DNA of 64,000 nucleotides from Carpediemonas membranifera BICM (GCA_019828565.1 JAHDYR010000004.1:1-64000), one strand, 5' to 3'. Numbered from the stretch's first letter, positions 22,701 to 54,006 are shown. Translations and numbers: made by a program. Notes: generated by a model not told the origin, from the sequence alone.

Positions 22701-25700
22701 GGCGTCCTCCATGTACTCCTTCGTGTACGCCAGCGCGCGAATCAGGCCGGCGTGGGTGTAGCTCGTGGGAATACGCTCGGCGTGCTGGGACGTCGGCTGG
22801 GCGATGAACGCGTCGATGGCGGTCTGCACGAGCTCCGAAGCGTCGTGATAGTCGGCGGGTGTGGCACCGTCGGAGTGTTTCAGAGCGGTGACAGCGATCT
22901 TTGGGCTCATGCCCCCGTCGACGAGGTCAAGGAAGTCTTGGGCAAACGCGGCCACGGCGAGGTGCCTCCGCAGAACAGGGTCACGCACGGCAGACGAACG
23001 GGGCCCATCCCCAGCTGCATTCGCGGTGCTCTTGTATTGGTCGAGACGACGCACTAAGGCGCGCAGGGACTCCGGAGCCGAGTCGGCGGTGATCGTATTC
23101 ACGACAGCTGAAAGCTCGCGGAGGATCTTCTCGGCCATACGCTGAGATATGTGGGTGTTGAAAGATTTGATCAGCTCTGTCAGCTCAGAATTATCGGCGC
23201 TCGTCTTGAAATACCTGTTCTTGTCCAACGTGATTGTCGCGGGAGGGAAGGCCAGCCTCATCTTGAAGGAGCGGGGCAGGCCCGTGGCGAGGATGTGGAT
23301 GACGACCCGCGCCAGGTCGGCGAGGTAGAGGGGCGAGTCGTCGGACGGCAGGCGGATGTCGGCGCCGAGTGTGGGTTGGGCGCAGACCTCCTCGATCTCT
23401 GGCGACTTGATGGAGGGCCACTGCTTGGCGGTGTTGTCCTTTGACCCAGAGAGCAGGGTCGACCCGTCTGGAGAGAAGACGACACTGTTCGCCCAATCTG
23501 TGTGACCTCTGAGCGTTTTTGAAGCACTCGCCGCTGTCGATGCTCCAGAACTTGATGGTGTTGTCACCAGACCCAGAGGCGAGGGTCCTGCCGTCGGGCG
23601 AGAAGGCGACGCTGAAGACAAAGTGCGTGTGCCCCCCTGAGGACGGCGACGCACTCCCAGGTCCTGGTGTCCCAGAGTCTGATGGTGCTGTCCCACGACC
23701 CAGAGGCCAGCAGAGCGCCGTCCGGGGAGATGGCGACTGTGGCGAGATAACTCGTGTGGCCCTCCAGAGTCTGCTCGAGTCTGCCCGACTCAGCGTCCCA
23801 CACCTTGATTGTCTTGTCCTTTGATCCAGAGACGATGGTCTTGCCGTCAGGGGAGATGGCGACGGAGAGCACCAAATCTGAGTGCCCTTCCATCGTCCTG
23901 CACACGCCGGTGGCGACGTCCCACGACCCTGACTGTCTTGTCATCGGATCCGGACACCAGCGTCTTGCCGTCTGGGGAGAAGGCGACGCTTCTCACATCC
24001 CTGGTGTGCCCCTCGAGCGTCTTGACGAGTCTGCCGCGCCTCCACAGCTTGATCTTGCGGTCATCACCGCCCGAGGCGATGGTCGACCCGTCCGGGGAGA
24101 CGGCGATGCACCGAACAGACCCGCCATGCTCCATCGTCGTGCACACGCCGCGCTTGTCCCACAGCTTGGTCGTCCCATCCCATGACCCAGTGACCATGGC
24201 GCCGTCAGGGAGGAAGGCTACGCTGGTCACGTCATCGGTGTGACCCTTCATCGTGTGGATGCACTCAGCCATCCTCGCATGCCAGGCAGCGAGCATGGCG
24301 TCGACGGCGCTGTCGGGCTTGTCGGCGGCCAGCTTGCCATACCTCATCGTGACAGTGAGGTCGGGCTCAGTCAGCCTCATGCTGAACTCTCGGGGCCGCG
24401 CCGAGAGGTGGTCGAGGACGCGGGTGAGGTCGGCGACGGTGCCCCTCGAGGCGGACGATGGCCGCGGCCGGGACAGGCTCGGCGAGGGTCTGGTCGAGGG
24501 CGGTGAGCTCGGGAGAGCGACCAAGGGACCACTACTTGGCGGTTTTTGTCGTCAGATCCAGAGAGCAGGGTCGACCCGTCCGGGGAGAAGGCGACGCAGC
24601 GGACCCAATCGTCATGGCCCCTGAGCGTCTCGAAGCACTCGCCGCTAGCGATGCTCCAGAGCTTGGTGTTGTCACCAGACCCAGAGGCGAGGGTCCTGCC
24701 GTCGGGCGAGAAGGCGACACTGCTAGAACTCGCGTGCCCCCTGAGGACGGCGACGCACTCCCCAGGTCCTGGTGTCCCAGAGTCTGATGGTGTTGTCGCC
24801 AGACCCAGAGGCCAGCAGAGCGCCGTCCGGGGAGATGGCGACGGAGAAGACAGAATTCGTGTGGCCCTCCAGAGTCTGCTCGAGTCTGCCCGACTCAGCG
24901 ACCCACACCTTGATTGTCTTGTCCTTTGATCCAGAGACGATGGTCTTGCCGTCAGGGGAGATGGCGACGGAGAGCACCAAATGGGAGTGCCCCTTCCATC
25001 GTCCTGCACTCGCCGGTGGCGACGTCCCACGTCCTGACTGTCTTGTCATCGGATCCGGACACCAGCGTCTTGCCGTCTCGGGAGAAAGCGACGCTTCTCA
25101 CATCATTGGTGTGCCCCTCGAGCGTCTTGACGAGTCTGCCGGTCTGGTCCCACAGCTTGATCTTGTGGTCATCACCGCCCGAGGCGATGGTCGACCCGTC
25201 CGGGGAGACGGCGATGCACCGAACAGACCCGCCATGCTCCATCGTCGTCTTGCACACGCCGCGCTTGTCCCACAGCTTGGTCGTCCCATCCCATGACCCA
25301 GTGACCTGGTGCCGTCAGGGAGGAAGGCGACGCTGAACACCCAGTTGGTGTGACCCTTCATCGTGTGGATGCACTCAGCCATCCTCGCATTCCAGGCAGC
25401 GAGCAGATCGTCGATGGCGCTGTCGGGCTTGTCGGCGGCCAGCTTGCCATACCTCATCGTGACAGTGAGGTCGGGCTCAGTCAGCCTCATGCTGAACTCT
25501 CTGGGCCGCGCCGAGAGGTGGTCGAGGACGCGGGTGAGGTCGGCGACGGTGCCCTCGAGGCGGACGATGGCCGCGGCCGGGACAGGCTGGGCGAGGTCTG
25601 GTCGAGGGCGGTGAGCTCGGGAGAGCGACCAAGGGACCACTGCTTGGCGGTCTTTGTCGTCAATCCAGAGAGCAGGGTCGACCCGTCTGGGGAGAAGGCG

Positions 25701-28700
25701 ACGCTCCACACCTTATCGGCATGACCCCTGAGCGTAGCGAAGCACTCGCCGCTAGCGATGCTCCAGAGCTTGGTGTTGTCACCAGACCCAGAGGCGAGGG
25801 TCCCTGCCGTCGGGCGAGAAGGCGACGCTGAAGACAAAGTGCGTGTGCCCCCTGAGGACGGCGACGCACTCCCAGGTCCTGGTGTCCCAGAGTCTGATGG
25901 TGCTGTCCCACGACCCAGAGGCCAGCAGAGCGCCGTCCGGGGAGATGGCGACGGAGAAGACAGAATTCGTGTGGCCCTCCAGAGTCTGCTCGAGTCTGCC
26001 CGACTCAGCGACCCACACCTTGATTGTCTTGTCCTTTGATCCAGAGACGATGGTCTTGCCGTCAGGGGAGATGGCGACGGAGAGCACCAAATCTGAGTGC
26101 CCTTCCATCGTCCTGCACACGCCGGTGGCGACGTCCCACGACCTGACTGTCTTGTCATCGGATCCGGACACCAGCGTCTTGCCGTCTGGGGAGAAGGCGA
26201 GGCTCCACACATTATTTGTGTGTCCCTCGAGCGTCTTGACGAGTCTGCCGGACTGGTCCCACAGCTTGATCTTGTGGTCATCACCGCCCGAGGCGATGGT
26301 CGACCCGTCCGGGGAGACGGCGATGCACCGAACCTTCCCACCATGCTCCATCGTCATCTTGCAGGCGCCGCGCTTGTCCCACAGCTTGGTCGTCCCATCC
26401 CATGACCCAGTGACCATGGTGCCGTCAGGGAGGAAGGCGACGCTGAGCACCTCAGCGGTGTGACCCTTCATCGTCTGGATGCACTCAGCCATCCTCGCAT
26501 GCCAGGCAGCGAGCAGATCGTCGACGGCGCTGTCGGGCTTGTCGGCGGCCAGCTTGCCATACCTCATCGTGACAGTGAGGTCGGGCTCAGTCAGCCCTCA
26601 TGCTGAACTCTCGGGGCCGCGTCGAGAGGTGGTCGAGGACGCGGGTGAGGTCGGCGACGGTGCCCTCGAGGCGGACGATGGCCGCGGCCGGGACAGGCTG
26701 GGCGAGGGTCTGGGCGAGGGCGGTGAGCTCGGGAGAGCGACCAAGTGACCACTGCTTGGCGGTTTTGTCGTCAGATCCAGAGAGCAGGGTCGACCCGTCC
26801 GGGGAGAAGGCGACGCTCCACACCTTATCGGCATGATCCCTGAGCGTCTCGAAGCACTCGCCGCTGTCGATGCTCCAGAGCTTGATGGTGTTGTCATCAG
26901 ACCCAGAGGCGAGGGTCCTGCCGTCGGGCGAGAAGGCGACGCTGTTGACATAGTGCGTGTGCCCCCTGAGGACGGCGACGCACTCCCAGGTCCTGGTGTC
27001 CCAGAGTCTGATGGTCTTGTCGCCAGACCCAGAGGCCAGCAGAGCGCCGTCCGGAGAGATGGCGACGGAGAAGACAGAATTCGTGTGGCCCTCCAGAGTC
27101 TGCCCGACTCAGCGATCCACACCTTGATCGTCTTATCCCTTGATCCAGAGACGATGGTCTTGCCGTCGGGGGAGATGGCGACGGAGAGCACCAAATCTGA
27201 GTGCCCTTCCATCGTCCTGCACGCGCCGGTGGCGACGTCCCACGACCTGACTGTCTTGTCCCAGGATCCGGACACCAGCGTCTTGCCGTCTCGGGAGAAG
27301 GCGAGGCTCCACACATTATTGGTGTGCCCCTCGAGCGTCTTGACGAGTCTGCCGGTCTGGTCCCACAGCTTGATCTTGTGGTCATCACCGCCCGAGGCGA
27401 TGGTCGACCCGTCCGGGGAGACGGCGATGCACCGAACCTTCCCGCCATGCTCCATCGTCGTGCACACGCCGCGCTTGTCCCACAGCTTGGTCGTCCCATC
27501 CCATGACCCAGTGACCATGGTGCCGTCAGGGAGGAAGGCGACGCTGAGCACCTCAGCGGTGTGACCCTTCATCGTCTGGATGCACTCAGCCATCCTCGCA
27601 TGCCAGGCAGCGAGCAGATCGTCGACGGCGCTGTCGGGCTTGTCGGCGGCCAGCTTGCCATACCTCATCGTGACAGTGAGGTCGGGCTCAGTCAGCCCTC
27701 ATGCTGAACTCTCTGGGCCGTGTCGAGAGGTGGTCGAGGACGCGGGTGAGGTCGGCGACGGTGCCCCTCGAGGCGGACGATGGCCGCGGCCGGGACAGGC
27801 TGGGCGAGGGTCTGGTCGAGGGCGGTGAGCTCGGGAGAGCGACCAAGGGACCACTGCTTGGCGGTTTTTGTCGTCAGATCCAGAGAGCAGGGTCGACCCG
27901 TCTGGGGAGAAGGCGACGCTGTTCACATCTCTGTCATGACCCCAGAGCGTCTCGAAGCACTCGCCGCTGTCGATGCTCCAGAGCTTGGTGGTGTTGTCCC
28001 AAGACCCAGAGGCGAGGGTCCTGCCGTCGGGCGAGAAGGCGACGCTGAAGACAAAGCTCGCGTGCCCCCCTGAGGACGGCGACGCACTCCCAGGTCCTGG
28101 TGTCCCAGAGTCTGATGGTCTTGTCGCCAGACCCAGAGGCCAGCAGAGCGCCGTCCGGGGAGATGGCGACGGCGGCGACAGAATTCGTGTGGCCCTCCAG
28201 AGTCTGCTCGAGTCTGCCCGACTCAGCGATCCACACCTTGATTGTCTTGTCCTTTGATCCAGAGACGATGGTCTTGCCGTCGGGGGAGATGGCGACGGAG
28301 AGAACCCAATCTGAGTGCCCTTCCATCGTCCTGCACACGCCGGTGGCGACGTCCCACGACCTGACTGTCTTGTCATCGGATCCGGACACCAGCGTCTTGC
28401 CGTCTCGGGAGAAGGCGAGGCTGTTCACAATATCGGTGTGTCCCTCGAGCGTCTTGACGAGTCTGCCGCGCCTCCACAGCTTGATCTTGCGGTCAGTCCC
28501 GCCCGAGGCGATGGTCGACCCGTCCGGGGAGACGGCGATGCACCGAACAGCCCCGCCATGCTCCATCGTCATCTTGCACACGCCGCGCTTGTCCCACAGC
28601 TTGGTCGTCCCATCTGATGACCCGGTGACCATGGTGCCGTCAGGGAGGAAGGCGACGCTGAACACGTCATCGGTGTGACCCTTCATCGTCTGGATGCACT

Positions 28701-29144
28701 CAGCCATCCTCGCATGCCAGGCAGCGAGCAGATCGTCGACGGCGCTGTCGGGCTTGTCGGCGGCCAGCTTGCCATACCTCATCGTGACAGTGAGGTCGGG
28801 CTCAGTCAGCCTCATGCTGAACTCTCTGGGCAGCCCGTCCAATGTCGAGAGGTGGTCGAGGACGCGGGTGAGGTCTGTAGCAGTGAGGGGCGTGGATCCG
28901 ATGGGCTTGAGGTGGAGCTTGTCCTCTGGGGCGAAGATGCGCGTCGTGGCGTCTCTGATCATGTCATCTACTGCTCTGCACTCGCTGCTGCGTGATATTC
29001 TCGGGGAGGACGCACCATTGCTCAGATCTACTGCGTAAACGCTCTTGAACTCGCCGCGGGCTGCATCTCTGCACCAACGGGATAGGGAACGTACCAGCTG
29101 CGTAAGTGGGAGGCGTGGAACGAACTTTCTGCATCGTCGCTGAT

Positions 29145-30419
29145 TCATCTCGCTGAATTTGGATGGTGTTTGCGACTTTGAGCAGTCCGACATCGTGACG
29201 TCCCAAAAAGTTCGTGTTTGTCCAGGTGTCTCTGGTGGCAGCCATCGTCGAGATGGCGTGACTCGCCGCCCACTGCGGGGTGATGCCGCCAATCAAATGA
29301 TGAGCCTCCTTCCTCGGCCCCAGGTCGCACACGACGAGTTGCCTCGATCTGTCTCCCCGTCACAGCCACGAGCTTCGTCCCTACAGCCGTGAGCACGTGG
29401 GCGCCCTGCTCTGCGTCGGGCAGGATGTGGTCTCTGTGGGGGTGGCTGTTGAACGAGCCGTTGTTGTGGTACACAACTGCCCCACCGCGCTCGTCGCCGG
29501 CGATGATGTGGCCTTGGGCCGAGAACGAGGCAGCCAGCATTGATCGCTGACACCTATGGTTCGAGAAGACCGTCAGGGGCCGAGTAAGATGTCTCGCGTC
29601 CCACAGCTTGACGGTCGAGTCCCGACCCGAGCTGAGTATCTCCCCATGCGGCGAGACATCGAGAGTGTTGAGAGCATGTCGGTGTGCCCTCACAGCCTCA
29701 CCCCAGGTATCGGCGCGAGGGTCGTAGAGGCTAAAGTACCCGGCCCTGTTAGTAACAACCAGGCTGGGGTCGGCGGTGTCGCCATGGAGCTGTCTGATGG
29801 CGGAGGGGCCGGTGCTCACCCCCGATGGATGGCATGTGGGAGATGGAAGCACGCGAGGACAGCCGCATGCTGTGGACGTCCCGGGAGACTATCGTGCCGT
29901 CGATCAGGCCATGTAGAGGCGAGGCAGCGGCCAAAGGATTTTACCGTCTAGTGAAGCTCATCTGCGTGGCTGTGGGCGTGTTCATGAAGCTCTGCTCGTA
30001 CCCGCCCCGCTGCCCGAGCACGGTCGCCACGCCCATGACGGAGCCGGCAGTCATCGCCTTTGGAAAGGGCGTTCGAGCGCTTCCCGCCGAACACAAGGCC
30101 TGACGCCTCGTAGAGGAGGTCTCGGCTCTTCCCTGCCGGGGGTGTGTCCAAGGTACCGCTTGAACCCAGAGGAGAGCTTCTCGTCGGGGGTCTCCTCCGC
30201 GGCAGTGGTGCTCGCCGCACGCTCGAGAATGGACCGCCTGAGCAACGCGTCCCTTGTTCTCGTACTCCTTCAGCCTCTTGTCGAGCTCCCTCTCGCGCTC
30301 AGTGGCTTCCCTTTAACCTGCGAAGGGATGAAGCCCCTCGACTCCAGCTGGAGCATGAAGCGGCGCTGCTGTATTGGACTGGCGTACTTCCATAGTGAGT
30401 CGGGCAGCCTCTCGCCCAT
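29145..30419 (-). CDS. Diverged WD40-repeat protein 'W', copy 2 (frameshifted)
   Basis: ORF 29145-29852 (FSLYDPRAD...LSSGRDSTVKLWDARHL); ATG at 30419 as in copy 1. Confidence 0.6.
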
Positions 30420-30449
30420 AATAAAAATAAATGCGATGGAATAAATATA

Positions 30450-31760
30450 AAAGCGTCTCGAGCGTCCTGTTCTTGCCGCCCCCCGACGCCCCGCCTGTCC
30501 CTCCATATGCCCACGAGCATCCCCCGGCTATAGCGTACCTTGCCCGCCTCTTCCGTTCGACCCAGGCCCTCCAATGCCGCTGGATCATTCTCACAGTCGA
30601 GTCGAGAGTCAGGTCGCCCTTGCTGGTGGCCATACTGCCGGAGACTCTCCCTCGTGTCCAGTCTGGGGCCACTGGGGAGAGCGAGGTGACCTGGAAGTCC
30701 CGACCCCTGCAGAGGTTTCACAGTGAGGTTGGGCGGGTCGTCTCGTTGCCCACCAATGTATGAAAGCGACCCGATGGCCTGGCGGTGGGCCTTCGCTGCG
30801 TCCATGGACTCACGCAGCGCTGCCTCCCTTCTCGGCCTCGAGCTTGCGGACCTGCCGGGCGAGCGTGTTGGTGTACCCGACAATTCCGGTGCGTCTGCGG
30901 CCCTTCACGTGGGGGTAGGCGGAGCAGTGCGCGCTCTCCAAGGCTTCCATGCGCTCCTTTGTCCGCTGCGTGGCCGTAATCTGCGCCGTAGTGATTTCTA
31001 GCACCTTCGCTGACCTGAACGCCTCGATCGAGCTTGCTGCGTCCACCAGGAAATTGCTGCCCGACCCGCATGTGACCACATACGGTGTGGGCGATACCAC
31101 TGCCTTCAGCTCCACTGATAACGCGTGTTTGAGAACTATAGTCCGCTTCATCGTGCGCACGTGCTTCACCTCGACGCGATGTGACCTCATGAACCTGGCA
31201 CGATCCCCGGCTGCATTCTTGATCTCATCCGCGCATTCTGAGAGAGTCTCATCCCTGTGCTGCCCCGTTCTCGGTGTGGCCATCAAGTTACTAATCGAGG
31301 TGTCGTCGTCTTCTCATCAATCTCGCCGACGCCCCCCAGCCTGAACAGTGGCAGCGTAGGGATGTCTGAGCGGCGCCTGGCATGCTGTCTTGACCCTGGA
31401 CCGGACGGTATTCTGCTCCGACTCTTGCTAAACTGCGCGGAGAGCTCATCAATGGGTGGAAGAGTGAGGGCTGCTCGGGGCGTGATCGTCGGAGACGAGG
31501 AGGACTTCCCTATAGACCGCGGGAAGCGCTGCGGGGTCGGGTTGAGGGACGACATGGCGTCGTTGTCGGCTCTGAGGCGGGATCGGGTGGCCAGGCGGAT
31601 CTTGCGCATGCTGAGCGTGTTAACGATGCTTGTGAACTCCTGTCACAGGTAGTACTCTGCTGCTGTCTGAACAGGAGCCGCTGGCGTCGACGGCGATGCT
31701 AAAGGCGGAGTCGACTTGTACTGGGAGTCGATTGAGCGTATCCCCAGCCGGTATTGACAT
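30450..31760 (-). CDS. IQ-motif hypothetical protein, copy 2 (frameshifted)
   Basis: Duplicate of 1260-2575. Confidence 0.5.
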
Positions 31761-31788
31761 CTCTAGCACATATACACACGTATAAACA

Positions 31789-33205
31789 CTACACCAACTC
31801 CTCTGTATGCGCCGTGGCCGGGAACGCGGCGCCGCTGTTGGGGTAACCTGCGAAGAAATCGGCCAGATTAGACCGCCATCCATGGTCAAACTGGTTGTGC
31901 CAGACGCCATTCTCGTATCTGATGTAGTCATATCGCATCCAATTGATTGCCTCATTAGTCGTCAGATTTGTCAAAAATATTCTTGACCTGCTGATGGAAC
32001 AAACGATAAACGAAAGGCAACGTGGCCCCAGCGATGGCAGCCATGACCACCGTCCCTGATCTGAGCACCGCAATCCTCCACAGCTTTGCCCACAGACTGC
32101 CTTCGAGTCCGCCGACGTGGCAGACAACCATAGTCAAGGGAAGAACAGTCGTGACCGCAAGCGCGACCATGGTGGCAAGTAGCATTGCCATAAACTGCCG
32201 GATATTACCCGCACCGATGCAGCAGTTTGTCCAGACGCAGTGGTGGTCGTGCCGCCTGATACACACGTCGCACGAACGGCAGTGCTTGCTGCGGAGGGGC
32301 TTTTTGACGTGGCAGGACTCGCAGATCGGCTGCTCCTTCGTGTAGTCGATCTTTGAGTGTGGGTCGTCGTTGGTGATAACGCCGGGGTTCGCTCGATTGG
32401 TGATTACTAGAAGAACGAGGGCTGCTACGGTGGGCAAAACCGCGAATATAAACACGTAAATGGGGTGGGGTGAGGGTATAACCCCGAAAAGGAACGTCGT
32501 GACGATCGCCGCGACAAGGCCAGCGAAGTACACCAGCAAGCCGACCGGGGCACGCCTCACACGATGCCACCAGGCCGTCTGCCCTCTTCGAATACCGTAC
32601 ACAAGGCCCTGGAGCTGCTTTGCCTCAGCAAGTCTTGCGGGCGTGGCACCGTCCAGGTCTAGTGGTTCGAGCGCCACGCCCCGGCCCACGAGGAAGACCA
32701 CGTTCTCGTAGTTCCCGCCCATGACCGCTGCGTGGAGAGAGGTCCGCTTCCTAGCGTCAGTGGCCTCTAGGTCGGCGCCGTGTCTTGCCAGGAGCCGCAC
32801 AAGATGGGGCGACCCCTGCTCGCACGCCCAGTGGAGCGGGGTGCGGCCCTGGGCGTCCCTGGAGTTGATGTCTGCGCCTCTAGTGACCAAGAGGCCGGCG
32901 GTGACCGGGTAGTCGCCCTGGATGGCCAGGTGGAGGGGGGTGAGGCCATTGGCTTCTTTCTCCTCAATGTGCAGGGCGCCAACTGGGTCGGAGAGCAGGA
33001 AGTCCACTACTGCTGCGTGGCCTTGCTGGGCTGCGCGTGCTAGGGGCGTCATTTGCGCTGAATCCTTCGACATTCTTTCGCCTGCATCGATAAGCTTCTG
33101 CACGCGGGAAAGATCGCCGTTCCAGCACGCCCAGTGCATTGATGTCTCTGTATTGATATTCACCTCATCGTTAACCACAGCGTTCTGCCGTGGTGCCTCG
33201 TCCAT
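31789..33205 (-). CDS. Ankyrin-repeat DHHC palmitoyltransferase (Akr1/ZDHHC13-17 type), copy 2
   Basis: ORF 31955-33457 has ankyrin repeats, TM segments and [37 protein letters not shown]. The TTxE tail is in ORF 31789-32127 after a T-run indel. Confidence 0.9.
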
Positions 33206-33572
33206 CGTCGACGCGCCCGTTCTTCGTGTCAACTCGGCCGAGTCAGCAACGGTGGCATGCAGCGCCGACGCAGCGAGGACGCTACCTTGAGTGCCGGCCC
33301 GACATCTCCACCCTCGGCTCCTGAATGATGGCCCAAAACAGTGTACTGTGTTGTCATGACACCGATCGTACCTGTTGACAGCCGATGGAAGCGATGACTC
33401 AATGCGACCATGTGGTGGTGTGCTTGGGTGGCCGAGTCCCGGTTGACAGGCGCACATTTGCTGTGGCCTTCGAGTTGATGGCTCAGAAGCGCTTCAACGT
33501 GTTCCAAGCTTATGAGTGACGGAGGAGGCCTGGCGATGGGTCGGGGCGGGTGTAAATGCTGAGCCAATCTCT

Positions 33573-36500
33573 TTACCTGTACATGTCGTTCAGCGTGCGC
33601 AGGCCCGGGGCGCTGGGCGCGTTCGTGCGGTATGTCGCGGTGACCGTGCCCATCGCGGCGAGCGCGGCTGCTCTCTCGTCTTCGGACAGCGTCATCATGC
33701 CGGGGGCGCTGGCGTTCGCGAAGGTGTCGACCTCGTGGTTGCGCACGGCGCTCTCCGTGTACATCTCGGTCGCGACGCTGTCGGGCAGCGCGGCGACGAC
33801 CTCCGCGAAGGTGGGGCGGTCGCGCGGGTCGGGCGCCACGCAGCGGCGGATCAGCTCGCCCACGGCCGCCGGCGTGCCCGCGGGGATCATCGGCCGGTAG
33901 CCAGCCCGCACGTGCGCGCGGATGGCGTCGAGCCCGAGGCGCTCCTGGCGGTACGGGATGTCGCGCGCGGCGATCTCCCAGAGCGTGATGCCGAAGGCGT
34001 AGACGTCGGCCTTCTCGCCGCCCACGCCGTCGAAGCGCTCGGGCGCCATCCACGGCCACGAGCCCTCGACGTCCGCCACGCGCTGGTCGAGCCGCGCGGT
34101 CAGCCCGAAGTCGCTGATCTTGGCCTTCTTGTTCGCGACGAGGACGTTGAGCGACTTGAGGTCCCTGTGCTCGTAGCCCTCGCCCACGATGAACGCCATG
34201 GCCGCCGCGATGTCGCGCGCGAACTGCAGCCGCGCGTCCCAGGGCAGGTCGGCCTTCGAGAGCAGCAGCGCCGAGAGCGACCCCGACGCGAGCTCGAGCG
34301 CGAGCCGGATCTCCCGGTCGTCCTGCTCGAGCGCGTAGAGCGCGACGACGTTGCTGTGGCGCAGCTGCTTGTGGATGAAGATCTCGCTCTGGAGTCGGTC
34401 GGCCTGCACCGCGTTCAGGTCGGCCCGCGCGACGACCTTGACGGCGCAGGCGGTGCCGCCGTACGTGCCGCGGAAGACGGCCGCCATGCCGCCCTCGCCG
34501 ATGCGGTCGGCCTGGCTGAACGCGATGCTGCCCGCCGGCTTCGTGATGTCCGCGTTGAGGTCGGGCTGCACGAGCGGCTCGGGCGTCTGGTCCTGGATCA
34601 GGAGATACTGCAGGTTGCTGCCCTTCTTGACTGTCTGCGCAGCCGTCTTGCCCTTGTACGCCGCGGCCCGGTCGGCGCCGTGCTTCAGCAGCAGGCTGAC
34701 GATGTCGAAGTTGCCCGCCTTGACGGCAGCGAAGAGCGGCGGCATCTTGCCGTCCACGCCGTTCGCGGACACGCCCGCCGCGAGCAGCCGCTTCACGGCA
34801 GCGGTGTCGCCCTGCATGATGGCGTCGCTGAGCTGCTTTGTCAGGGCGTCGTTGATGGCGGCCCGGATCACGCCGGCCATAAGCGGGTCGGCCACGCCCT
34901 TTACGACCTGCAGCGCGTTGACGCCGACCGGCGGGAGGAGGGGGTCGGCGCCGCGGGCGAGCAGCTTCGTCGCGGAGTCCCAGTGGCCGCCCTGGATGGC
35001 GACCACGAGCGCAGTCGTGTTCCGGCTGACGGTGTCGATGTCAACCCTCGCGGCCAGCATCGCGGCCAGCATCGGCGGCTTGGCGACGGCGGCCAGCAGT
35101 GGGTGGCCGTCCGGGAAGGCGTCGTCGAGCAGGCAGCCGGCCTTGAGCAGCGCCGCGAAGGCCTGCGGCTGGTCGTGCACGAACGCGCTGTGCAGCGGCG
35201 ACCGGCGCTCGCGATCGAGGCAGTTGAGGACGACGGGGCCGAACTTGACACTCCGGAGCAGCGTCTTCGAGCGCATCTTGGCGACGTCGCCGCTGATGAT
35301 GTGCGCGTGGAGCTCGTCGCTCCTCTCCAGCGCCTCCTTGACGCGGCCCCTGAGCGCGGGCATCGGGTCATTGGCGAGCGCCTGCACGGGCTGGAGGCGG
35401 GCGAGGCCGGTCCTCAGCGCGAGCACTCGCGCCTCGTGCTGCGTCGCGTGCGGGCCGGCGGCGGCCAGCAGGGACTCGGCTTGGGCCAGCAGGCGCTTGG
35501 CGTCGCTCAGATCCGCGGCCACGTACAGCGCTTCGTCAACGGCGTCGAGAGCACGTGTTTCAGCCAACAGTGTCAGTAACATAGGGTGGCGGTTGAGTAG
35601 CTCGAGAAGGGCTTCAACATCGGCGGCTTGGCTCGACGTGAATCCGGTAGGACCAAGAGAGACGGTGCATTCGGGGTGGGCCAGCCTCATCTCGAAGGAG
35701 CGGGGCAGGCCCGTGGCGAGGATGTGTATGACGACCCGCGCCAGATCGGCGAGGTAGAGGGGCGAGTCGTCGGACGGCAGGCGGATGTCGGCGCCGAGTG
35801 TGGGTCGGGCGCAGACCTCCTTGATCTCTGGTGAGTTAGTGGAGGACCACTGCTTGGCGGTGTTGTCCACCGATCCAGAGAGCAGGGTCGACCCCTCTGG
35901 GGAGAAGGCGACGCTGTTCACATCTCTGCCATGACCCCAGAGCGTCTCGAAGCACTCGCCGCTGCCGATGCTCCAGAGCTTGGTGGTGTTGTCCCAAGAC
36001 CCAGAGGCGAGGGTCCTGCCGTCGGGCGAGAAGGCGACGCTGCGGACAAAGCTCGCGTGCCCCCTGAGGACGGCGACGCACTCCCAGGTCCTGGTGTCCC
36101 AGAGTCTGATGGTCTTGTCGCCAGACCCAGAGGCCAGCAGAGCGCCGTCCGGGGAGATGGCGACGGCGGCGACAGAATTCGTGTGGCCCTCCAGAGTCTG
36201 CTCGACTCTGCCCGACTCAGCGATCCACACCTTGATTGTCTTGTCCTTTGATCCAGAGACGATGGTCTTGCCGTCGGGGGAGATGGCGACGGAGAGAACC
36301 CAATCTGAGTGCCCTTCCAACGTCCTGCACTCGCCGGTGGCGACGTCCCACGACCTGACTGTCTTGTCCCAGGATCCGGACACCAGCGTCTTGCCGTCTG
36401 GGGAGAAGGCGAGGCTCCACACATTATTGGTGTGTCCCTCGAGCGTCTTGACGAGTCTGCCGGTCTGGTCCCACAGCTTGATCTTGTGGTCATCACCGCC

Positions 36501-39359
36501 CGATGCGATGGTTGACCCGTCCGGGGAGACGGCGATGCACCGAACCTTCCCACCATGCTCCATCGTCATCTTGCACACGCCTCGCTTGTCCCACAGCTTG
36601 GTCGTCCCATCCCATGACCCAGTGACCATGGTGCCGTCAGGGAGGAAGGCGACGCTGAACACCGCATCGGTGTGACCCTTCATCGTCTGGATGCACTCAG
36701 CCATCCTCGCATGCCAGGCAGCGAGCAGATCGTCGACGGCGCTGTCGGGCTTGTCGGCGGCCAGCTTGCCATACCTCATCGTGACAGTGAGGTCGGGCTC
36801 AGTCAGCCTCATGCTGAACTCTCTGGGCCGCGCCGAGAGGTGGTCGAGGACGCGGGTGAGGTCGGCGACGGTGCCCTCGAGGCGGACGATGGCCGCGGCC
36901 GGGACAGGCTGGGCGAGGGTCTGGTCGAGGGCGGTGAGCTCGGGAGAGCGACCAAGGGACCACTGCTTGGCGGTGTTGTCCACCGATCCAGAGAGCAGGG
37001 TCGACCCGTCCGGGGAGAATGCGACGCAGCGGACGCAATCGTCATGACCCCTGAGCGTCTCGAAGCACTCGCCGCTGCCGATGCTCCAGAGCTTGGTGGT
37101 GTTGTCCCAAGACCCAGAGGCGAGGGTCCTGCCGTCGGGCGAGAAGGCGACGCTGCGGACAAAGCTCGCGTGCCCCCTGAGGACGGCGACGCACTCCCAG
37201 GTCCTGGTGTCCCAGAGTCTGATGGTCTTGTCGCAAGACCCAGAGGCCAGCAGAGCGCCGTCCGGGGAGATGGCGACGGCGGCGACAGAATTCGTGTGGC
37301 CCTCCAGAGTCTGCTCGAGTCTGCCCGACTCAGCGATCCACACCTTGATTGTCTTGTCCTTTGATCCAGAGACGATGGTCTTGCCGTCGGGGGAGATGGC
37401 GACGGAGAGAACCCAATCTGAGTGCCCTTCCAACGTCCTGCACTCGCCGGTGGCGACGTCCCACGACCTGACTGTCTTGTCCCAGGATCCGGACACCAGC
37501 GTCTTGCCGTCTGGGGAGAATGCGAGGCTCCACACATTATTGGTGTGCCCCTCGAGCGTCTTGACGAGTCTGCCGGACTGGTCCCACAGCTTGATCTTGT
37601 GGTCATCACCGCCCGATGCGATGGTCGACCCGTCCGGGGAGACGGCGATGCACCAAACAGACCCGCCATGCTTCATCGTCGTCTTGCACACGCCTCGCTT
37701 GCCCCACAGCTTGGTCGTCCCATCTGATGACCCAGTGACCATGGTGCCGTCAGGGAGGAAGGCGACGCTGAGCACCTCAGCGGTGTGACCCTTCATCGTC
37801 TGGATGCACTCAGCCATCCTCGCATGCCAGGCAGCGAGCAGATCGTCGACGGCGCTGTCGGGCTTGTCGGCGGCCAGCTTGCCATACCTCATCGTGACAG
37901 TGAGGTCGGGCTCAGTCAGCCTCATGCTGAACTCTCTGGGCCGCGCCGAGAGGTGGTCGAGGACGCGGGTGAGGTCGGCGACGGTGCCCTCGAGGCGGAC
38001 GATGGCCGCGGCCGGGACAGGCTGGGCGAGGGTCTGGTCGAGGGCGGTGAGCTCGGGAGAGCGACCAAGGGACCACTGCTTGGCGGTCTTGTCCTCCGAT
38101 CCAGAGAGCAGCGTCGACCCGTCCGGGGAGAAGGCGACGCAGCGGACCCAATCATCATGACCCCTGAGCGTCTCGAAGCACTCGCCGCTGCCGATGCTCC
38201 AGAGCTTGGTGGTGTTGTCCCAAGACCCAGAGGCGAGGGTCCTGCCGTCGGGCGAGAAGGCGACGCTGCTGACAACATTCGCGTGCCCCCTGAGGACGGC
38301 GACGCACTCCCAGGTCCTGGTGTCCCAGAGTCTGGTGGTCTTGTCGCAAGACCCAGAGGCCAGCAGAGCGCCGTCCGGGGAGATGGCGACGGCGGCGACA
38401 GAATCAGTGTGGCCCTCCAGAGTCTGCTCGAGTCTGCCCGACTCAGCGATCCACACCTTGATTGTCTTGTCATTTGATCCAGAGACGATGGTCTTGCCGT
38501 CGGGGGAGATGGCGACGGAGAGAACCCAATCTGAGTGCCCTTCCAACGTCCTGCACGCGCCGGTGGCGACGTCCCACGACCTGACTGTCTTGTCCCAGGA
38601 TCCGGACACCAGCGTCTTGCCGTCTGGGGAGAATGCGAGGCTGCACACATCCCTGGTGTGCCCCTCGAGCGTCTTGACGAGTCTGCCGCGCCTCCACAGC
38701 TTGATCTTGCGGTCATCACCGCCCGATGCGATGGTTGACCCGTCCGGGGAGACGGCGATACACCGAACCTTCCCACCATGCTCCATCGTCGTCTTGCACA
38801 CGCCGCGCTTGTCCCACAGCTTGGTCGTCCCATCCCATGACCCAGTGACCATGGCGCCGTCAGGGAGGAAGGCGACGCTGAGCACCTCATCGGTGTGACC
38901 CTTCATCGTCTGGATGCACTCAGCCATCCTCGCATTCCAGACAGCGAGCAGATCGTCGACGGCGCTGTCGGGCTTGTCGGCGGCCAGCTTGCCATACCTC
39001 ATCGTGACAGTGAGGTCGGGCTCAGTCAGCCTCATGCTGAACTCTCTGGGCCGCGTCGAGAGGTGGTCGAGGACGCGGGTGAGGTCTGTAGCGGTGAGGG
39101 GCGAGGATCCGATGGGCTTGAGGTGGAGCTTGTCCTCTGGGGCGAAGATGCGCGTCGTGGCGTCTCTGATCATGTCCTCTACTGCTCTGCACTCGCTGCT
39201 GCGTGAGATTCTCGGGGAGGACGCACCATTGCTCAGATCTACTGCGTAAACGCTCTTGAACTCGCCGCGGGCTGCATCTCTGCACCAACGGGATTGGGAA
39301 CGTACCAGCTGCGTAAGTGGGTGGCGTGGAACGAACTTTCTGCATCGTCGCTGATTCAT
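33573..39359 (-). CDS. WD40-array gene C (intact): leader + 3 seven-bladed WD40 propellers + connector + ankyrin repeats + TKL-type Ser/Thr kinase; ORF is open upstream to 40142
   Basis: Uninterrupted 2189-codon ORF; propeller period 1110-1113 bp; complete kinase motifs (IGEGGMAAVF, AVK, HRDLKSLNVL, DFG, WMAPE, DVYAFG). Confidence 0.93.
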   Translation of the reverse strand: MNQRRCRKFVPRHPLTQLVRSQSRWCRDAARGEFKSVYAVDLSNGASSPRISRSSECRAVEDMIRDATTRIFAPEDKLHLKPIGSSPLTATDLTRVLDHLSTRPREFSMRLTEPDLTVTMRYGKLAADKPDSAVDDLLAVWNARMAECIQTMKGHTDEVLSVAFLPDGAMVTGSWDGTTKLWDKRGVCKTTMEHGGKVRCIAVSPDGSTIASGGDDRKIKLWRRGRLVKTLEGHTRDVCSLAFSPDGKTLVSGSWDKTVRSWDVATGACRTLEGHSDWVLSVAISPDGKTIVSGSNDKTIKVWIAESGRLEQTLEGHTDSVAAVAISPDGALLASGSCDKTTRLWDTRTWECVAVLRGHANVVSSVAFSPDGRTLASGSWDNTTKLWSIGSGECFETLRGHDDWVRCVAFSPDGSTLLSGSEDKTAKQWSLGRSPELTALDQTLAQPVPAAAIVRLEGTVADLTRVLDHLSARPREFSMRLTEPDLTVTMRYGKLAADKPDSAVDDLLAAWHARMAECIQTMKGHTAEVLSVAFLPDGTMVTGSSDGTTKLWGKRGVCKTTMKHGGSVWCIAVSPDGSTIASGGDDHKIKLWDQSGRLVKTLEGHTNNVWSLAFSPDGKTLVSGSWDKTVRSWDVATGECRTLEGHSDWVLSVAISPDGKTIVSGSKDKTIKVWIAESGRLEQTLEGHTNSVAAVAISPDGALLASGSCDKTIRLWDTRTWECVAVLRGHASFVRSVAFSPDGRTLASGSWDNTTKLWSIGSGECFETLRGHDDCVRCVAFSPDGSTLLSGSVDNTAKQWSLGRSPELTALDQTLAQPVPAAAIVRLEGTVADLTRVLDHLSARPREFSMRLTEPDLTVTMRYGKLAADKPDSAVDDLLAAWHARMAECIQTMKGHTDAVFSVAFLPDGTMVTGSWDGTTKLWDKRGVCKMTMEHGGKVRCIAVSPDGSTIASGGDDHKIKLWDQTGRLVKTLEGHTNNVWSLAFSPDGKTLVSGSWDKTVRSWDVATGECRTLEGHSDWVLSVAISPDGKTIVSGSKDKTIKVWIAESGRVEQTLEGHTNSVAAVAISPDGALLASGSGDKTIRLWDTRTWECVAVLRGHASFVRSVAFSPDGRTLASGSWDNTTKLWSIGSGECFETLWGHGRDVNSVAFSPEGSTLLSGSVDNTAKQWSSTNSPEIKEVCARPTLGADIRLPSDDSPLYLADLARVVIHILATGLPRSFEMRLAHPECTVSLGPTGFTSSQAADVEALLELLNRHPMLLTLLAETRALDAVDEALYVAADLSDAKRLLAQAESLLAAAGPHATQHEARVLALRTGLARLQPVQALANDPMPALRGRVKEALERSDELHAHIISGDVAKMRSKTLLRSVKFGPVVLNCLDRERRSPLHSAFVHDQPQAFAALLKAGCLLDDAFPDGHPLLAAVAKPPMLAAMLAARVDIDTVSRNTTALVVAIQGGHWDSATKLLARGADPLLPPVGVNALQVVKGVADPLMAGVIRAAINDALTKQLSDAIMQGDTAAVKRLLAAGVSANGVDGKMPPLFAAVKAGNFDIVSLLLKHGADRAAAYKGKTAAQTVKKGSNLQYLLIQDQTPEPLVQPDLNADITKPAGSIAFSQADRIGEGGMAAVFRGTYGGTACAVKVVARADLNAVQADRLQSEIFIHKQLRHSNVVALYALEQDDREIRLALELASGSLSALLLSKADLPWDARLQFARDIAAAMAFIVGEGYEHRDLKSLNVLVANKKAKISDFGLTARLDQRVADVEGSWPWMAPERFDGVGGEKADVYAFGITLWEIAARDIPYRQERLGLDAIRAHVRAGYRPMIPAGTPAAVGELIRRCVAPDPRDRPTFAEVVAALPDSVATEMYTESAVRNHEVDTFANASAPGMMTLSEDERAAALAAMGTVTATYRTNAPSAPGLRTLNDMYR

Positions 39360-40493
39360 CTCGCTGAATTTGGATGGTGTTTGCGACTTTGAGCAGTCCG
39401 ACATCGTGACGTCCCAAAAGTTCGTGTTTGTCCAGGTGTCTCTGGTGGCAGCCATCGTCGAGATGGCGTGACTCGCCGCCCACTGCGGGGTGATGCCGCC
39501 AATCAAATGATGAGCCTCCTTCCTCGGCCCCAGGTCGCACACGACGAGTTGCCTCGATCTGTCTCCCGTCACAGCCACGAGCTTCGTCCCTACAGCCGTG
39601 AGCACGTGGGCGCCCTGCTCTGCGTCGGGCAGGATGTGGTCTCTGTGGGGGTGGCTGTTGAACGAGCCGTTGTTGTGGTACACAACTGCCCCACCGCGCT
39701 CGTCGCCGGCGATGATGTGGCCTTGGGCCGAGAACGAGGCAGCCAGCATTGATCGCTGACACCTATGGTTCGAGAAGACCGTCAGGGGCCGAGTAAGATG
39801 TCTCGCGTCCCACAGCTTGACGGTCGAGTCCCGACCCGAGCTGAGTATCTCCCCATGCGGCGAGACGTCGAGAGTGTTGAGAGCATGTCGGTGTGCCCTC
39901 ACAGCCTCACCCCAGGTATCGGCGCGAGGGTCGTAGAGGCTAAAGTACCCGGCCCTGTTAGTAACAACCAGGCTGGGGTCGGCGGTGTCGCCATGGAGCT
40001 GTCTGATGGCGGAGGGGCCGGTGCTCACCCCGATGGATGGCATGTGTGAGATGGAAGCACGCGAGGACAGCCGCATGCTGTGGACGTCCCGGGAGACTAT
40101 CGTGCCGTCGATCAGGCCATGTAGAGGCGAGGCAGCGGCCAAAGGATTTACCGTCTAGTGAAGCTCATCTGCGTGGCTGTGGGCGTGTTCATGAAGCTCT
40201 GCTCGTACCCGCCCCGCTGCCCGAGCACGGTCGCCACGCCCATGACGGAGCCGGCAGTCATCGCCTTGGAAAGGGCGTTCGAGCGCTTCCCGCCGAACAC
40301 AAGGCCTGACGCCTCGTAGAGGAGGTCTCGGCTCTTCCCGCCGGGGGTGTGTCCAAGGTACCGCTTGAACCCAGAGGAGAGCTTCTCGTCGGGGGTCTCC
40401 TCCGCGGCAGTGGTGCTCGCCGCACGCTCGAGAATGGACCGCCTGAGCAACGCGTCCTTGTTCTCGTACTCCTTCAGCCTCTTGTCGAGCTCC
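39360..40493 (-). pseudogene. Third, 5'-truncated copy of WD40 gene 'W'
   Basis: Matches ~29150-30290; homology ends abruptly at 40493, where gene D sequence begins. Confidence 0.75.
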
Positions 40494-43104
40494 CTTCGGG
40501 GCGAGTCAGCCTCATCGCGAATGAGGTGGGCAAGGTCTCCCGCCTCAGCAGGAGGCCAGCCACGGTCTTCAGGTCGCCAATCGTGAGCGGCGCGTGCTCG
40601 CCCAGCTTGATTCGGTAATCACTCGAGATTGACCCAAGATTCGCCTTCAGGAAGCTGAAAGAGTTCAGCACCTCGGCCACGGCATCCGAGTCCGGGGTGA
40701 CGACGAAGCGACCTTGCTGCAGGGTGACGGTGGCGGCTGGGTCGTCGAGCTGAACCTCGAATGAGCGGGGCGCGACCCTAGAGGCCTCGACGCGCGCGAG
40801 GAGCTTCTTCAGCGCGGGCAGGTCGGCGTGGGTGACTCTGATCGCGGTCTTGGCCGTGACCGCTTGGGCGCAGACTCTAGCAACTGCTGCGTCGAGTCTA
40901 AGATGGTTGAGCGGCAGTAGGGCGGCGGCGATCTTGTCATCCGCGGGCGAGACTGAGATGAAGCCGTTAGGGTCCATGACGGCGGTGGACGCGGCAGGCA
41001 GGGCGATCCCGGCGTCGGCGCAGGCCTGGGCGACCAGCTTGTTGAGGCGACTCTGGTTGAGCGGGGCGAGTAGGCCGCGAACCTCGGAGTTTGATGGGGT
41101 CTCAAAGAAGAGGCCATCATCCATGCTGACAGCGACAGGTGGGTGGGCCAGCCTCATCTCGAAGGAGCGGGGCAGGCCCGTGGCGAGGATGTGGATGACG
41201 ACCCGCGCCAGGTCGGCGAGGTAGAGGGGCGAGTCGTCGGACGGCAGGCGGATGTCGGCGCCGAGCGTGGGTTGGGCGCAGACCTCCTCGATCTCTGGCG
41301 ACTTGATGGAGGACCACTGCTTGGCGGTGTTGTCCACCGATCCAGAGAGCAGGGTCGACCCGTCCGGGGAGAATGCGACGCAGCGGACGCAATCGTCATG
41401 ACCCCTGAGCGTCTCGAAGCACTCGCCGCTGCCGATGCTCCAGAGCTTGATGGTGTTGTCACCAGACCCAGAGGCGAGGGTCCTGCCGTCGGGCGAGAAG
41501 GCGACGCTGAAGACAAAGCTCGCGTGCCCCCTGAGGACGGCGACGCACTCCCAGGTCCTGGTGTCCCAGAGTCTGATGGTCTTGTCGCCAGACCCAGAGG
41601 CCAGCAGAGCGCCGTCCGGGGAGATGGCGACGGCGGCGACAGAATTCGTGTGGCCCTCCAGAGTCTGCTCGACTCTGCCCGACTCAGCGATCCACACCTT
41701 GATTGTCTTGTCCTTTGATCCAGAGACGATGGTCTTGCCGTCGGGGGAGATGGCGACGGAGAGAACCCAATCTGAGTGCCCTTCCAACGTCCTGCACTCG
41801 CCGGTGGCGACGTCCCACGACCTGACTGTCTTGTCATCGGATCCGGACACCAGCGTCTTGCCGTCTGGGGAGAATGCGAGGCTGCACACATCCCTGGTGT
41901 GCCCCTCGAGCGTCTTGACGAGTCTGCCGCGCCTCCACAGCTTGATCTTGCGGTCATCACCGCCCGATGCGATGGTTGACCCGTCCGGGGAGACGGCGAT
42001 GCACCGAACAGCCCCGCCATGCTCCATCGTCGTGCACACGCCTCGCTTGCCCCACAGCTTGGTCGTCCCATCCCATGACCCAGTGACCATGGCGCCGTCA
42101 GGGAGGAAGGCGACGCTGAGCACCTCAGCGGTGTGACCCTTCATCGTCTGGATGCACTCAGCCATCCTCGCATGCCAGGCAGCGAGCAGATCGTCGACGG
42201 CGCTGTCGGGCTTGTCGGCGGCCAGCTTGCCATACCTCATCGTGACAGTGAGGTCGGGCTCAGTCAGCCTCATGCTGAACTCTCTGGGCCGCGCCGAGAG
42301 GTGGTCGAGGACGCGGGTGAGGTCGGCGACGGTGCCCTCGAGGCGGACGATGGCCGCGGCCGGGACAGGCTGGACGAGGGTCTGGTCGAGGGCGGTGAGC
42401 TCGGGAGAGCGACCAAGTGACCACTGCTTGGCGGTTTTGTCGTCAGATCCAGAGAGCAGGGTCGACCCGTCCGGGGAGAAGGCGACGCTGTTCACATCAT
42501 CGTCATGGCCCCAGAGCGTCTCGAAGCACTCGCCGCTGCCGATGCTCCAGAGCTTGGTGGTGTTGTCCCAAGACCCAGAGGCAAGGGTCCTGCCGTCGGG
42601 CGAGAAGGCGACGCTGCTGACAACATTCGTGTGCCCCCTGAGGACGGCGACGCACTCCCAGGTCCTGGTGTCCCAGATTCTGATGGTGCTGTCCCATGAC
42701 CCAGAGGCCAGAAGAGCGCCGTCCGGAGAGATGGCGACGGAGAAGACAGAATTCGTGTGGCCCTCCAGAGTCTGCCCGACTCAGCGATCCACACCTTGAT
42801 TGTCTTGTCCTTTGATCCAGAGACGATGGTCTTGCCGTCGGGGGAGATGGCGACGGAGAGAACCCAATCTGAGTGCCCTTCCATCGTCCTGCACTCGCCG
42901 GTGGCGACGTCCCACGACCTGACTGTCTTGTCATCGGATCCGGACACCAGCGTCTTGCCGTCTGGGGAGAATGCGAGGCTCCACACATTATTGGTGTGTC
43001 CCTCGAGCGTCTTGACGAGTCTGCCGGTCTGGTCCCACAGCTTGATCTTGCTGTCAGTCCCACCCGAGGCGATGGTCGACCCGTCCGGGGAGACGGCGAT
43101 GCAC
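40474..43104 (-). pseudogene. WD40-array gene D: partial + complete propeller followed by tandem connector-type domains; 5' end replaced by a retrotransposon, 3' end fused to W
   Basis: ORFs 42492-43169 and 40474-42495; 10-bp deletion at ~42770; connector motifs PRSFEMRLAHP, PRSFEVQLDDP and PTSFAMRLTRP. Confidence 0.8.
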
Positions 43105-53097: not shown

Positions 53098-54006
53098 CTC
53101 GCTGAATTTGGATGGTGTTTGCGACTTTGGGCAGTCCGCCATCGTGACGTCCCAAAAGTTCGTGTTTGTCCAGGTGTCTCTGGTGGCAGCCATCGTCGAG
53201 ATGGCGTGACTTGCCGCCCACTGCGGGGTGATGCCGCCAATCAAATTCGGATGCTGTCGTGTCAGCGATTTATGAATTTACGTATTTATCCAGTTGTGTA
53301 TCAGTATATGTTCAAACCACGCCCAGGCCCCACCGAGGGCGAGGGTTGGGCATGACGCCGGTGTTCATAGGACTCATGGTTTCGAGTTCAATGCTACGAC
53401 CCTTTCGAATCGCATCTCTAAACTTTACTCGAATGCGTGTAAACCACGACTGGCCACGATTCAGCCGTTGAGGGGCGCCGAGGCACTCCGCGCTGACTCC
53501 GCTGGGTGGCGGCGGTGGGAGGGGGTGGGGGAAGGTGTGGGGGGTGGATGACCGACGGTGCCAGGCGGAGCAGGTGGTTGATATAGACACGGATAAATTC
53601 GTAAACTTGTGTAAACAACTGGCTCAGGCCGACAGCTCGACTGGGAGGAGCTCCAGTGGGCTGAACAATCCCAGCTTGACATTCCACTTGTCGTACACCA
53701 GAAGGGTAGCGGACATGAGGGCGTCGGCGATGGTAAGGGCGATCTTGCGGGCAGAGATGTGGAATCTGGCTGCGGACGCGTCAAGGTAGGCCTTTTATGT
53801 CCATTCAGCATATATACAGAGATCGACAGCGTTGGCTCACATGCATCGCTGACCTCGAGACACCCTGACTAACCTTGTGGGGACATGGGAGCGGTGATGG
53901 CCCGACCCACCCGAGAAGCCAGTCTGCCCACGGCTACGGCGAATGCCCAGGCCGTCCAGCATGCTGCCTTTGGTTCGTTGACTCAGCCACTTCCCAACAC
54001 ATTCCC

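Follow-up and report, generated by a model that had tools for sequence, protein, structure and literature searches.

Repeat receptors whose homogenised scaffold leaves them able to recombine, with selection diversifying the binding face, are found in fungal, plant and animal immunity, where they are tied to NLR or immunoglobulin-like systems. Moreover, templated diversification by gene conversion from silent copies is known from the trypanosome VSG genes and the chicken immunoglobulin pseudo-V genes. Here we describe a family of WD40 propeller cassettes from the free-living metamonad Carpediemonas membranifera, found in the first 64 kb (hereafter the window) of a 470,618-bp contig of its 24.2-Mb genome. 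The closest known case is the NWD/HNWD family of Podospora anserina (het-e, het-d, het-r; Paoletti et al. 2007, PMC1805685; Chevanne et al. 2010, PMC2873952). In this fungus strong positive selection acts on two pairs of WD40 codons, 7 and 9 of the d-a loop and 25 and 27 of the b-c turn, which flank a conserved Val and a conserved Asp codon, respectively (Paoletti et al. 2007, PMC1805685). The Carpediemonas genes share with NWD/HNWD a paralogous WD40 family whose repeat scaffold is near-identical, concerted evolution through exchange both inside a gene and from one gene to another, continued participation of pseudogene members, and diversifying selection at four matching structural positions, of which the d-a loop and the b-c turn hold two each. 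With the fungal NLRs that carry conserved ANK, TPR or WD repeats (Dyrka et al. 2014, PMC4986451) and the highly repetitive WD40 proteins of prokaryotes, fungi and protists, whose internal repeat identity is at least 0.7 (Hu et al. 2017, PMC5587647), they share a conserved scaffold with diversity at predicted interaction hotspots.

Self-comparison of the window revealed a 1113-bp cassette on the minus strand, present in 13 close copies and one diverged copy, that encodes a connector of ~85 aa and a seven-bladed WD40 propeller, together 371 aa. The first-pass annotation of this DNA had placed 14 near-identical propeller units between 23420 and 43104. The near identity was borne out (90-97% at the DNA level across the 1113-bp units, with scaffold distances between cassettes of 2-6%) and the count is right, but only 10 of the units lie in that interval, arrays A, E and F being outside it (Table 1). 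Genome-wide there are ~55 cassettes, nearly all within the first 325 kb of the same contig, with 1 to 5 cassettes per gene; family loci are labelled L001-L019.

To read the motifs all units were projected onto the frame of cassette C2, and 35 codons were taken as the top-face set, namely GH+2, GH+3, GH+5 and the residues around the Asp of SGSxD. Every variant that the first-pass annotation had listed for blades 1, 3, 4 and 7 was recovered. Blade 1 carries DEVL, AEVL, DAVF, DDVL, DDVT, DDVF, NWVI, NWVF or ADVI; blade 3 carries RDVC, RDVR, NDVR, NNVW, DVVN or DIVN, with W, D or Y before the Asp; blade 4 has N, K, S or R before the Asp; and blade 7 carries DWVR, DCVR, RDVN, DDVN, DKVW or DWAN, with E, V, D, S or K before the Asp. 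Nonsynonymous diversity peaks in the blade register at GH+2 (0.26), GH+3 (0.41), GH+5 (0.41), D-1 (0.36) and D+1 (0.16), and is 0.00-0.10 in most other registers of the 42-residue blade (Mann-Whitney p ~1e-17). The 35 top-face codons, which differ by 16-38% between cassettes, are polymorphic at 66 of their 105 nucleotides, whereas elsewhere 89 of 753 are (Fisher p 8e-29). Many of the changes are multi-base, as had been claimed: 61% of differing top-face codon pairs differ at two or more bases, compared to 19% elsewhere. The claim that variation is confined to the top face holds in part. It is concentrated there, but D+1 varies too, there is a smaller peak in the c-d loop (register +31, 0.23), and a few further c-d and a-b loop sites are variable (blade 3, H+11; blade 4, H-7 and H+29). 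Variation is absent from positions that are just as exposed, the a-b loop SPDG among them. The observation is thus confirmed as real and far beyond chance.

An AlphaFold2 model of the cassette has a mean predicted local distance difference test score of 89.5, rising to 97-98 in the propeller, and shows 28 strands after the connector in a confident seven-bladed fold. Template modelling (TM) scores, normalised by the target's length, are 0.94-0.97 to the seven-bladed WRAP-T and PkwA propellers, with a root-mean-square deviation of 0.8-1.6 A, and 0.84-0.89 to WDR5. In all blades of the model strand a opens with GH+5, and GH+2 and GH+3 are part of the d-a loop; strand b closes with D-1, and D+1 belongs to the b-c turn. 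Binding at the top face generally requires residues R1, with which strand a begins, R1-2 and D-1 (Wu et al. 2012). The variable codons, rather than being scattered over the model, are found where the d-a loop meets strand a and where strand b runs into the b-c turn, and so are predicted to form the canonical top face.

Diversifying selection, which the first-pass annotation had proposed for these sites, was evident by several routes. At 21 a-priori codons (GH+3, GH+5 and D-1 in each of seven blades) dN was 0.57 and dS 0.20, a ratio of 2.8, whilst dN/dS was 0.44 in the remaining propeller and near 1, on very few differences, in the connector. The top-face pN/pS ratio was 1.8-2.7 with the same codons as baseline, 1.7-2.5 with flanking codons and 5-8 with the remaining scaffold; in round terms it was 1.8-2.5 for the local baselines and ~6 for the scaffold. 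For all three baselines the bootstrap lower bound exceeded 1, whether the window set, its five intact cassettes or 21 intact cassettes of the family were used. Site models were fitted with a self-written Goldman-Yang-type likelihood, using a separate tree per blade to limit the effect of recombination, because a single-tree codon model inflated the signal (likelihood ratio test statistic (LRT) 152, omega 8) and was set aside. For the 11 window cassettes M2a was favoured over M1a (LRT 60.1, p 9e-14), with omega 4.2 at 13% of sites and 16 top-face codons among the 22 sites with posterior above 0.9; M8 was favoured over M7 (LRT 61.5), with omega 3.9 at 14% of sites and 21 top-face codons among 28. 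Among 18 intact de-duplicated cassettes the M2a-M1a comparison gave an LRT of 138.7, omega 5.6 at 9% of sites, and 21 sites with posterior above 0.9, of which 19 were top-face. In a control without the 35 codons the LRT dropped to 14.7 and the selected class to only 0.4% of sites, and three data sets simulated under M1a returned an LRT of 0.0 with parameters recovered. Selected sites beyond the top face fall in the a-b loop (blade 3, GH+11), the c-d loops of blades 2, 4 and 6 and the junction after blade 7, and hence 'confined' should read 'concentrated'. The codons of the top-face contact residues R1-2, R1 and D-1, together with GH+2 and D+1, carry an excess of amino-acid-changing differences, and each cassette is therefore predicted to have its own binding face.

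These ratios bear on whether the pattern reflects relaxed constraint or pseudogene decay, with surface residues drifting, especially in broken copies. Whilst arrays A and B and unit D1 do carry stops and deletions, and the connector ratio near 1 would suit such drift, the same pattern is present in the intact cassettes of both the window and the family. Moreover, omega is above 1 and not about 1, the SPDG loop is invariant despite its exposure, and alleles that differ only synonymously are almost lacking. We consider this explanation very unlikely.

Recombination is pervasive and the cassettes evolve in concert. Approximately half of informative-site pairs fail the four-gamete test, and the pairwise homoplasy index is significant over all sites (z = -11.5, p = 0.001) and stays so when restricted to scaffold codons (z = -3.7, p = 0.001) or to scaffold third positions (p = 0.012). 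Which cassette is the closest to a given one changes from blade to blade. Thus E1 and B1 show 0 differences in blades 2-3 and 18 in blade 7, C2 and C3 show 0 in blades 4 and 6 and 18 in blade 7, and A1 and B3 show 0 in blade 4 and 19 each in blades 2 and 7. In a GENECONV-like permutation test 9 of 55 unit pairs reached the floor (p = 0.0005) and 32 fell below 0.05, with tracts of 27-315 nt, some of which are common to broken arrays and intact genes (306 nt in B1-E1, 268 nt in B1-D2). Scaffold distance is 0.043 within arrays versus 0.052 between them (p = 0.006). The gene conversion suggested by the first-pass annotation, and its statement that variants recur in new combinations, therefore both stand, given the blade-wise mosaics and top-face haplotypes that are all different among 23 de-duplicated cassettes. 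Association between motif loci is 0.11 for neighbours and ~0 at distance, and identical motif alleles recur in several cassettes. The specific proposal that NDVR arose by recombination also survives inspection, as B4 matches NNVW-type units for 75 nt upstream, carries an RDVR-type tract of 13-25 nt, and matches NNVW-type units again downstream of it.

At 13 of 14 motif loci the nucleotide alleles equal the amino-acid alleles, with almost no synonymous-only allele pairs, and synonymous diversity in motif-flanking codons is three times higher than in the scaffold (0.205 versus 0.068). This combination fits a picture in which selection keeps the motifs distinct and they travel as short tracts. 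The linked synonymous variants are, however, also what suggests old haplotypes, and they give weight to the most serious rival, namely that these are old subfunctionalised paralogues whose ancient faces are now under purifying selection with fixed partners, conversion having erased their other divergence, with no continuing diversification or arms race. Recurrence of the same motif alleles in several cassettes and variation at the same sites in diverged members on other contigs would both be expected of it. A co-adapted face is nevertheless a poor fit to the near-free recombination of motif loci and 23 distinct haplotypes out of 23; omega is above 1 even within the same codons; and genes differ in their number of cassettes (1 to 5), some segmental copies being recent. 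On balance we think this rival improbable, albeit less so than the others considered here.

Exchange runs between homologous blades and not between different blades of a propeller. Of 12-mers compared between different blades, 0/67 were shared for the d-a motifs and 4/49 for the b-c motifs, and templating of motifs from other blades was rejected on these counts. The counts also speak against a targeted mutator, a diversity-generating retroelement or other site-directed hypermutation, having written the variation in place of selection. The clustered, multi-base changes and the retroelement reverse transcriptases nearby would accord with such a mutator, but the latter are ordinary Ty3/gypsy pol genes. 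Furthermore, all substitution types occur and the four bases vary alike (A 26/32, C 13/18, G 30/34, T 16/21), and as an adenine bias is absent mutagenesis of the retroelement type was rejected. As for the features of a diversity-generating retroelement target, the sole domains linked to reverse transcriptase that were seen are Ty3/gypsy RNase H and integrase, no dedicated template-repeat search having been run. Hypermutation of this kind is accordingly given very little credence.

The state of the copies raises the matter of assembly quality. Array B is damaged by a 10-bp deletion (B2), a TAG stop (B4) and several 1-bp indels; three further copies of it lie on the contig (L002, L004 and L006), and array A likewise has further copies. 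Large segmental copies, the five-cassette arrays at 86.5, 121.6 and 150.9 kb, are inverted relative to the window's copy. Comparison of 23415-28791 with L002:300-5685 and L006:275-5657 gave zero substitutions over most cassettes, yet different 1-bp indels, and the 1-bp indels in window units mostly extend base runs. Assembly error is therefore the probable source of most 1-bp frameshifts in these arrays. All copies of array B share the second cassette's 10-bp deletion and the fourth cassette's TAG, which are probably real and suggest that gene B was broken before its duplication. The deletion (unit nt 577-586, within the regions 27050-27110 for B2 and 42500-42560 for D1) is flanked by 8-base direct repeat copies, and its identical occurrence in B2 and D1 could be produced by repeated replication slippage or by conversion. 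The fifth cassette of L006 (4704-5657) differs from 23415-24356 and L002:4731-5685 only by 7 changes within 14 nt (unit nt 610-623), which swap the blade-5 motif TSYLA for TNSVF; either a polishing error or a micro-conversion of very recent date would explain the change.

Such noise could be extended to a more general artefact, in which the polishing of a long-read assembly with multi-mapping short reads copies variants between near-identical cassettes and gives false mosaics. Substitution-free copies with differing indels do betray a noisy assembly, and mis-polishing could create the L006 cluster. An artefact cannot, however, yield variation that is phased to codons and to the WD40 blade register. 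Moreover, the 70 motif alleles of the five-cassette array recur unchanged across three or four copies that were assembled independently, and intact ORFs of 2189 and 1229 aa traverse cassettes. It is highly improbable that the mosaics arose in this way.

Taken together, these data make it likely that the locus holds part of a recombining WD40 cassette family, peculiar to C. membranifera and under diversifying selection on the top face, a candidate recognition repertoire, and the interpretation of the first-pass annotation is supported; none of the three outcomes that it had named as refuting (scattered sites, dN/dS <= 1 or a missing recombination signal) was seen. Conversion or crossover in short tracts (~15-300 nt), exchanged between homologous blades across cassettes and genes, keeps the scaffold 94-98% identical and reshuffles the variants. 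Each propeller might then bind a different ligand via its top face, and ligand binding may control the C-terminal kinase or ATPase. The family would thus serve as a varied set of recognition modules, its most plausible targets being non-self or partners that change rapidly, and would work like the fungal NWD/HNWD receptors though not an NLR. Ligand recognition, expression and function of the cassettes are predictions made from sequence. We also entertain, tentatively, a bolder possibility: that Carpediemonas, with no detectable NLR-type NTPase, independently built an innate recognition repertoire from propeller cassettes wired to kinases or AAA+ ATPases, with the broken, repeatedly copied arrays serving as silent donor libraries from which top-face motifs are pasted by micro-conversion into expressed genes.

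Several points weigh against the reading of a recombining family under top-face selection. Half of the window's units are not in intact genes, with stops, the 10-bp deletion and frameshifts in arrays A and B and unit D1, and public Logan contigs cover the stretch in only two small sets (74-331 nt pieces of uncertain kind, probably one data set filed twice). The site models rely on our own code with fixed per-blade FastTree trees and naive empirical Bayes, and recombination within blades is outside the model. Taken alone, the 35 codons in the window give a modest result (omega 2.41 versus omega = 1, p = 0.012), and six selected sites of the 22-site window set are in bottom loops. Top-face assignment was made via strand topology and published hotspot rules, in place of measured coordinates; an alignment to WDR5 for mapping residue by residue fell just short of the E-value cut-off. 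Lastly, paralogues of one genome were compared, so that ongoing selection is indistinguishable from old, maintained diversity.

With regard to known systems, the locus follows a design known from Podospora NWD and from fungal NLR repeats generally, of which it is best seen as a new version that works at the level of cassettes in a metamonad, is not an NLR and is coupled to kinases or AAA+ modules. In contrast to NWD/HNWD the Carpediemonas genes are without NACHT or HET, the sensor is N-terminal and its partners are C-terminal ankyrin-kinase or AAA+ modules. The exchange unit is the whole 371-aa cassette, between homologous blades, and whereas the Podospora repeats are near-identical 42-aa units, the Carpediemonas blades are 43% identical within a propeller. 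In cassette C2 blade-to-blade identity is 0.43 for protein and 0.56 for DNA, against 0.91 from cassette to cassette. The value of 0.43 misses the cut-off of Hu et al. 2017; their proteins and those of Dyrka et al. 2014 are defined by within-protein repeat identity. The host, moreover, is a metamonad protist and has no repeat-induced point mutation. The best propeller matches are bacterial WD40 Ser/Thr kinases of the PkwA type and the Nostoc propeller 2YMU (42-56% identity, TM 0.94-0.97 by the target's length). PkwA-type proteins likewise combine a kinase with WD40 repeats, but the Carpediemonas kinase is C-terminal, of TKL/Tyr-like Pfam type and placed after ankyrin repeats, and the PkwA-type and Nostoc proteins are without the family connector, which is almost only in Carpediemonas. 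A search for close relatives in other organisms returned as best propeller matches generic bacterial and algal WD40 proteins of at most 56% identity. The short tracts common to broken arrays and intact genes recall the VSG and pseudo-V systems; unlike these, the Carpediemonas data show no sign of somatic or programmed conversion, directionality or a single expression site. A literature search found no paper describing these genes, and their public annotation is only 'tyrosine kinase', 'WD repeat protein' or 'CbxX/CfqX'. If the favoured reading is true, the design evolved convergently in a free-living metamonad, does not need an NLR core, and acts on whole propellers that feed kinases or AAA+ ATPases. 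It would then offer a testable entry point into non-self or ligand recognition of a deep-branching protist.

Table 1. Features of the window, with motif positions given for cassette C2.
Feature	Coordinates	Strand	Remarks
Array A	6654-8578	-	2 units
A1	7464-8578	-	2 stops, 5 one-base insertions
A2	6654-7463	-	one blade missing (126 bp)
Array A, downstream part	4919-6355	-	ankyrin repeats, then broken kinase
Gene B, C-terminal part	19796-23414	-	connector and CbxX-type AAA+ modules (AAA, AAA_lid_6); frame broken
Array B	23415-28791	-	five cassettes
B5	23415-24356	-	
B4	24357-25466	-	
B3	25467-26576	-	
B2	26577-27677	-	
B1	27678-28791	-	
DHHC palmitoyltransferase gene	31955-33457	-	with ankyrin repeats; between arrays B and C
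Gene C	33573-40142	-	intact 2189-aa ORF: N-terminal region, C1-C3, connector, ankyrin repeats, TKL-type protein kinase
Array C	35844-39011	-	3 units, free of frameshifts and stops
C3	35844-36788	-	
C2	36789-37901	-	
C1	37902-39011	-	
Connector	37800-38060	-	modelled domain
C2 blade 1, d-a loop motif	37770-37781	-	AEVL (codons GH+2 to GH+5)
C2 blades 2-7, d-a loop motifs	37653-37664, 37530-37541, 37407-37418, 37281-37292, 37155-37166, 37029-37040	-	
C2 blade 3, b-c turn motif	37476-37484	-	WDK (D-1, D, D+1)
C2 other b-c turn motifs	37719-37727, 37599-37607, 37353-37361, 37227-37235, 37101-37109, 36975-36983	-	
Gene C, extra N-terminus	39400-40142	-	weak WD40-like stretch
Array D	41311-43113	-	2 units
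D2	41311-42249	-	intact, inside ORF 40474-42495
D1	42250-43113	-	5' end cut; 10-bp deletion identical to that of B2
Ty3/gypsy-type pol fragment	43054-44196	-	RNase H, integrase; abuts truncated D1
Gene E	49555-53244	-	intact 1229-aa ORF: N-terminal region, one cassette, connector, ankyrin repeats, kinase
Array E	51805-52743	-	1 unit, in gene E
Giant ORF	53875-60744	+	2289 aa
Unit F	62377-63339	+	diverged; ~70% identity in blades 5-7

The genes that carry the cassettes differ in their state and partners. Gene C matches Pfam WD40 (PF00400) with E = 7.5e-268 over 22 stretches, and its kinase domain matches PK_Tyr_Ser-Thr with E = 2e-42. The catalytic motifs of the kinase (strand-3 Lys, HRD, DFG and APE) are present in the translation, by which it is a predicted active effector. 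Family members usually start at the Met of MSDCSK, but the gene C ORF opens ~250 aa earlier; this extra N-terminus, which is either a real extension or an upstream gene read through, encodes a weak, different WD40-like stretch. Gene A consists of two cassettes, ankyrin repeats and a broken kinase, and gene D has lost its 5' end beside the Ty3/gypsy pol fragment. Pfam found no NACHT in the cassette genes, NACHT and NB-ARC had 0 matches in the whole genome at E <= 0.001, and no HET domain was detectable in the genes or genome. NLR membership was ruled out, NACHT and NB-ARC being absent from both. By eye the N-terminal regions contain no hydrophobic stretch and the proteins were therefore taken as intracellular; family members thus look like intracellular multi-domain proteins, in which one to five tandem cassettes precede either an ankyrin and TKL-type kinase module or CbxX-type AAA+ ATPase modules.

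The connector was modelled as a small beta-alpha-beta-beta-beta-alpha domain. The N-terminal and connector part of gene E matches Carpediemonas membranifera proteins only. An exhaustive connector search gave 24 representatives, of which 8 were checked by name and 5 were named, all of the latter from Carpediemonas except one repetitive Lactobacillus surface protein. One connector-matching C. membranifera protein is annotated RhoGEF, and weak, repeated matches link the connector to a Limosilactobacillus LPXTG surface protein with 22 repeats.

Elsewhere in the family, L019, L016:1457-2362 and window unit A2 are short of precisely one blade (126 bp) or of a 51-bp piece of a blade, the expected outcome of unequal exchange between blades. 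A six-bladed unit may fold unlike the other cassettes. Several Ty3/gypsy insertions lie within the first 325 kb of the contig, and no telomere repeat was seen at its start. The giant plus-strand ORF next to gene E has no Pfam match. It lacks similarity to the connector, and the idea that it is an array of connector domains was therefore rejected. Its closest neighbours in language-model features are giant bacterial hypothetical proteins, and it resembles alpha-2-macroglobulin-like proteins more weakly.

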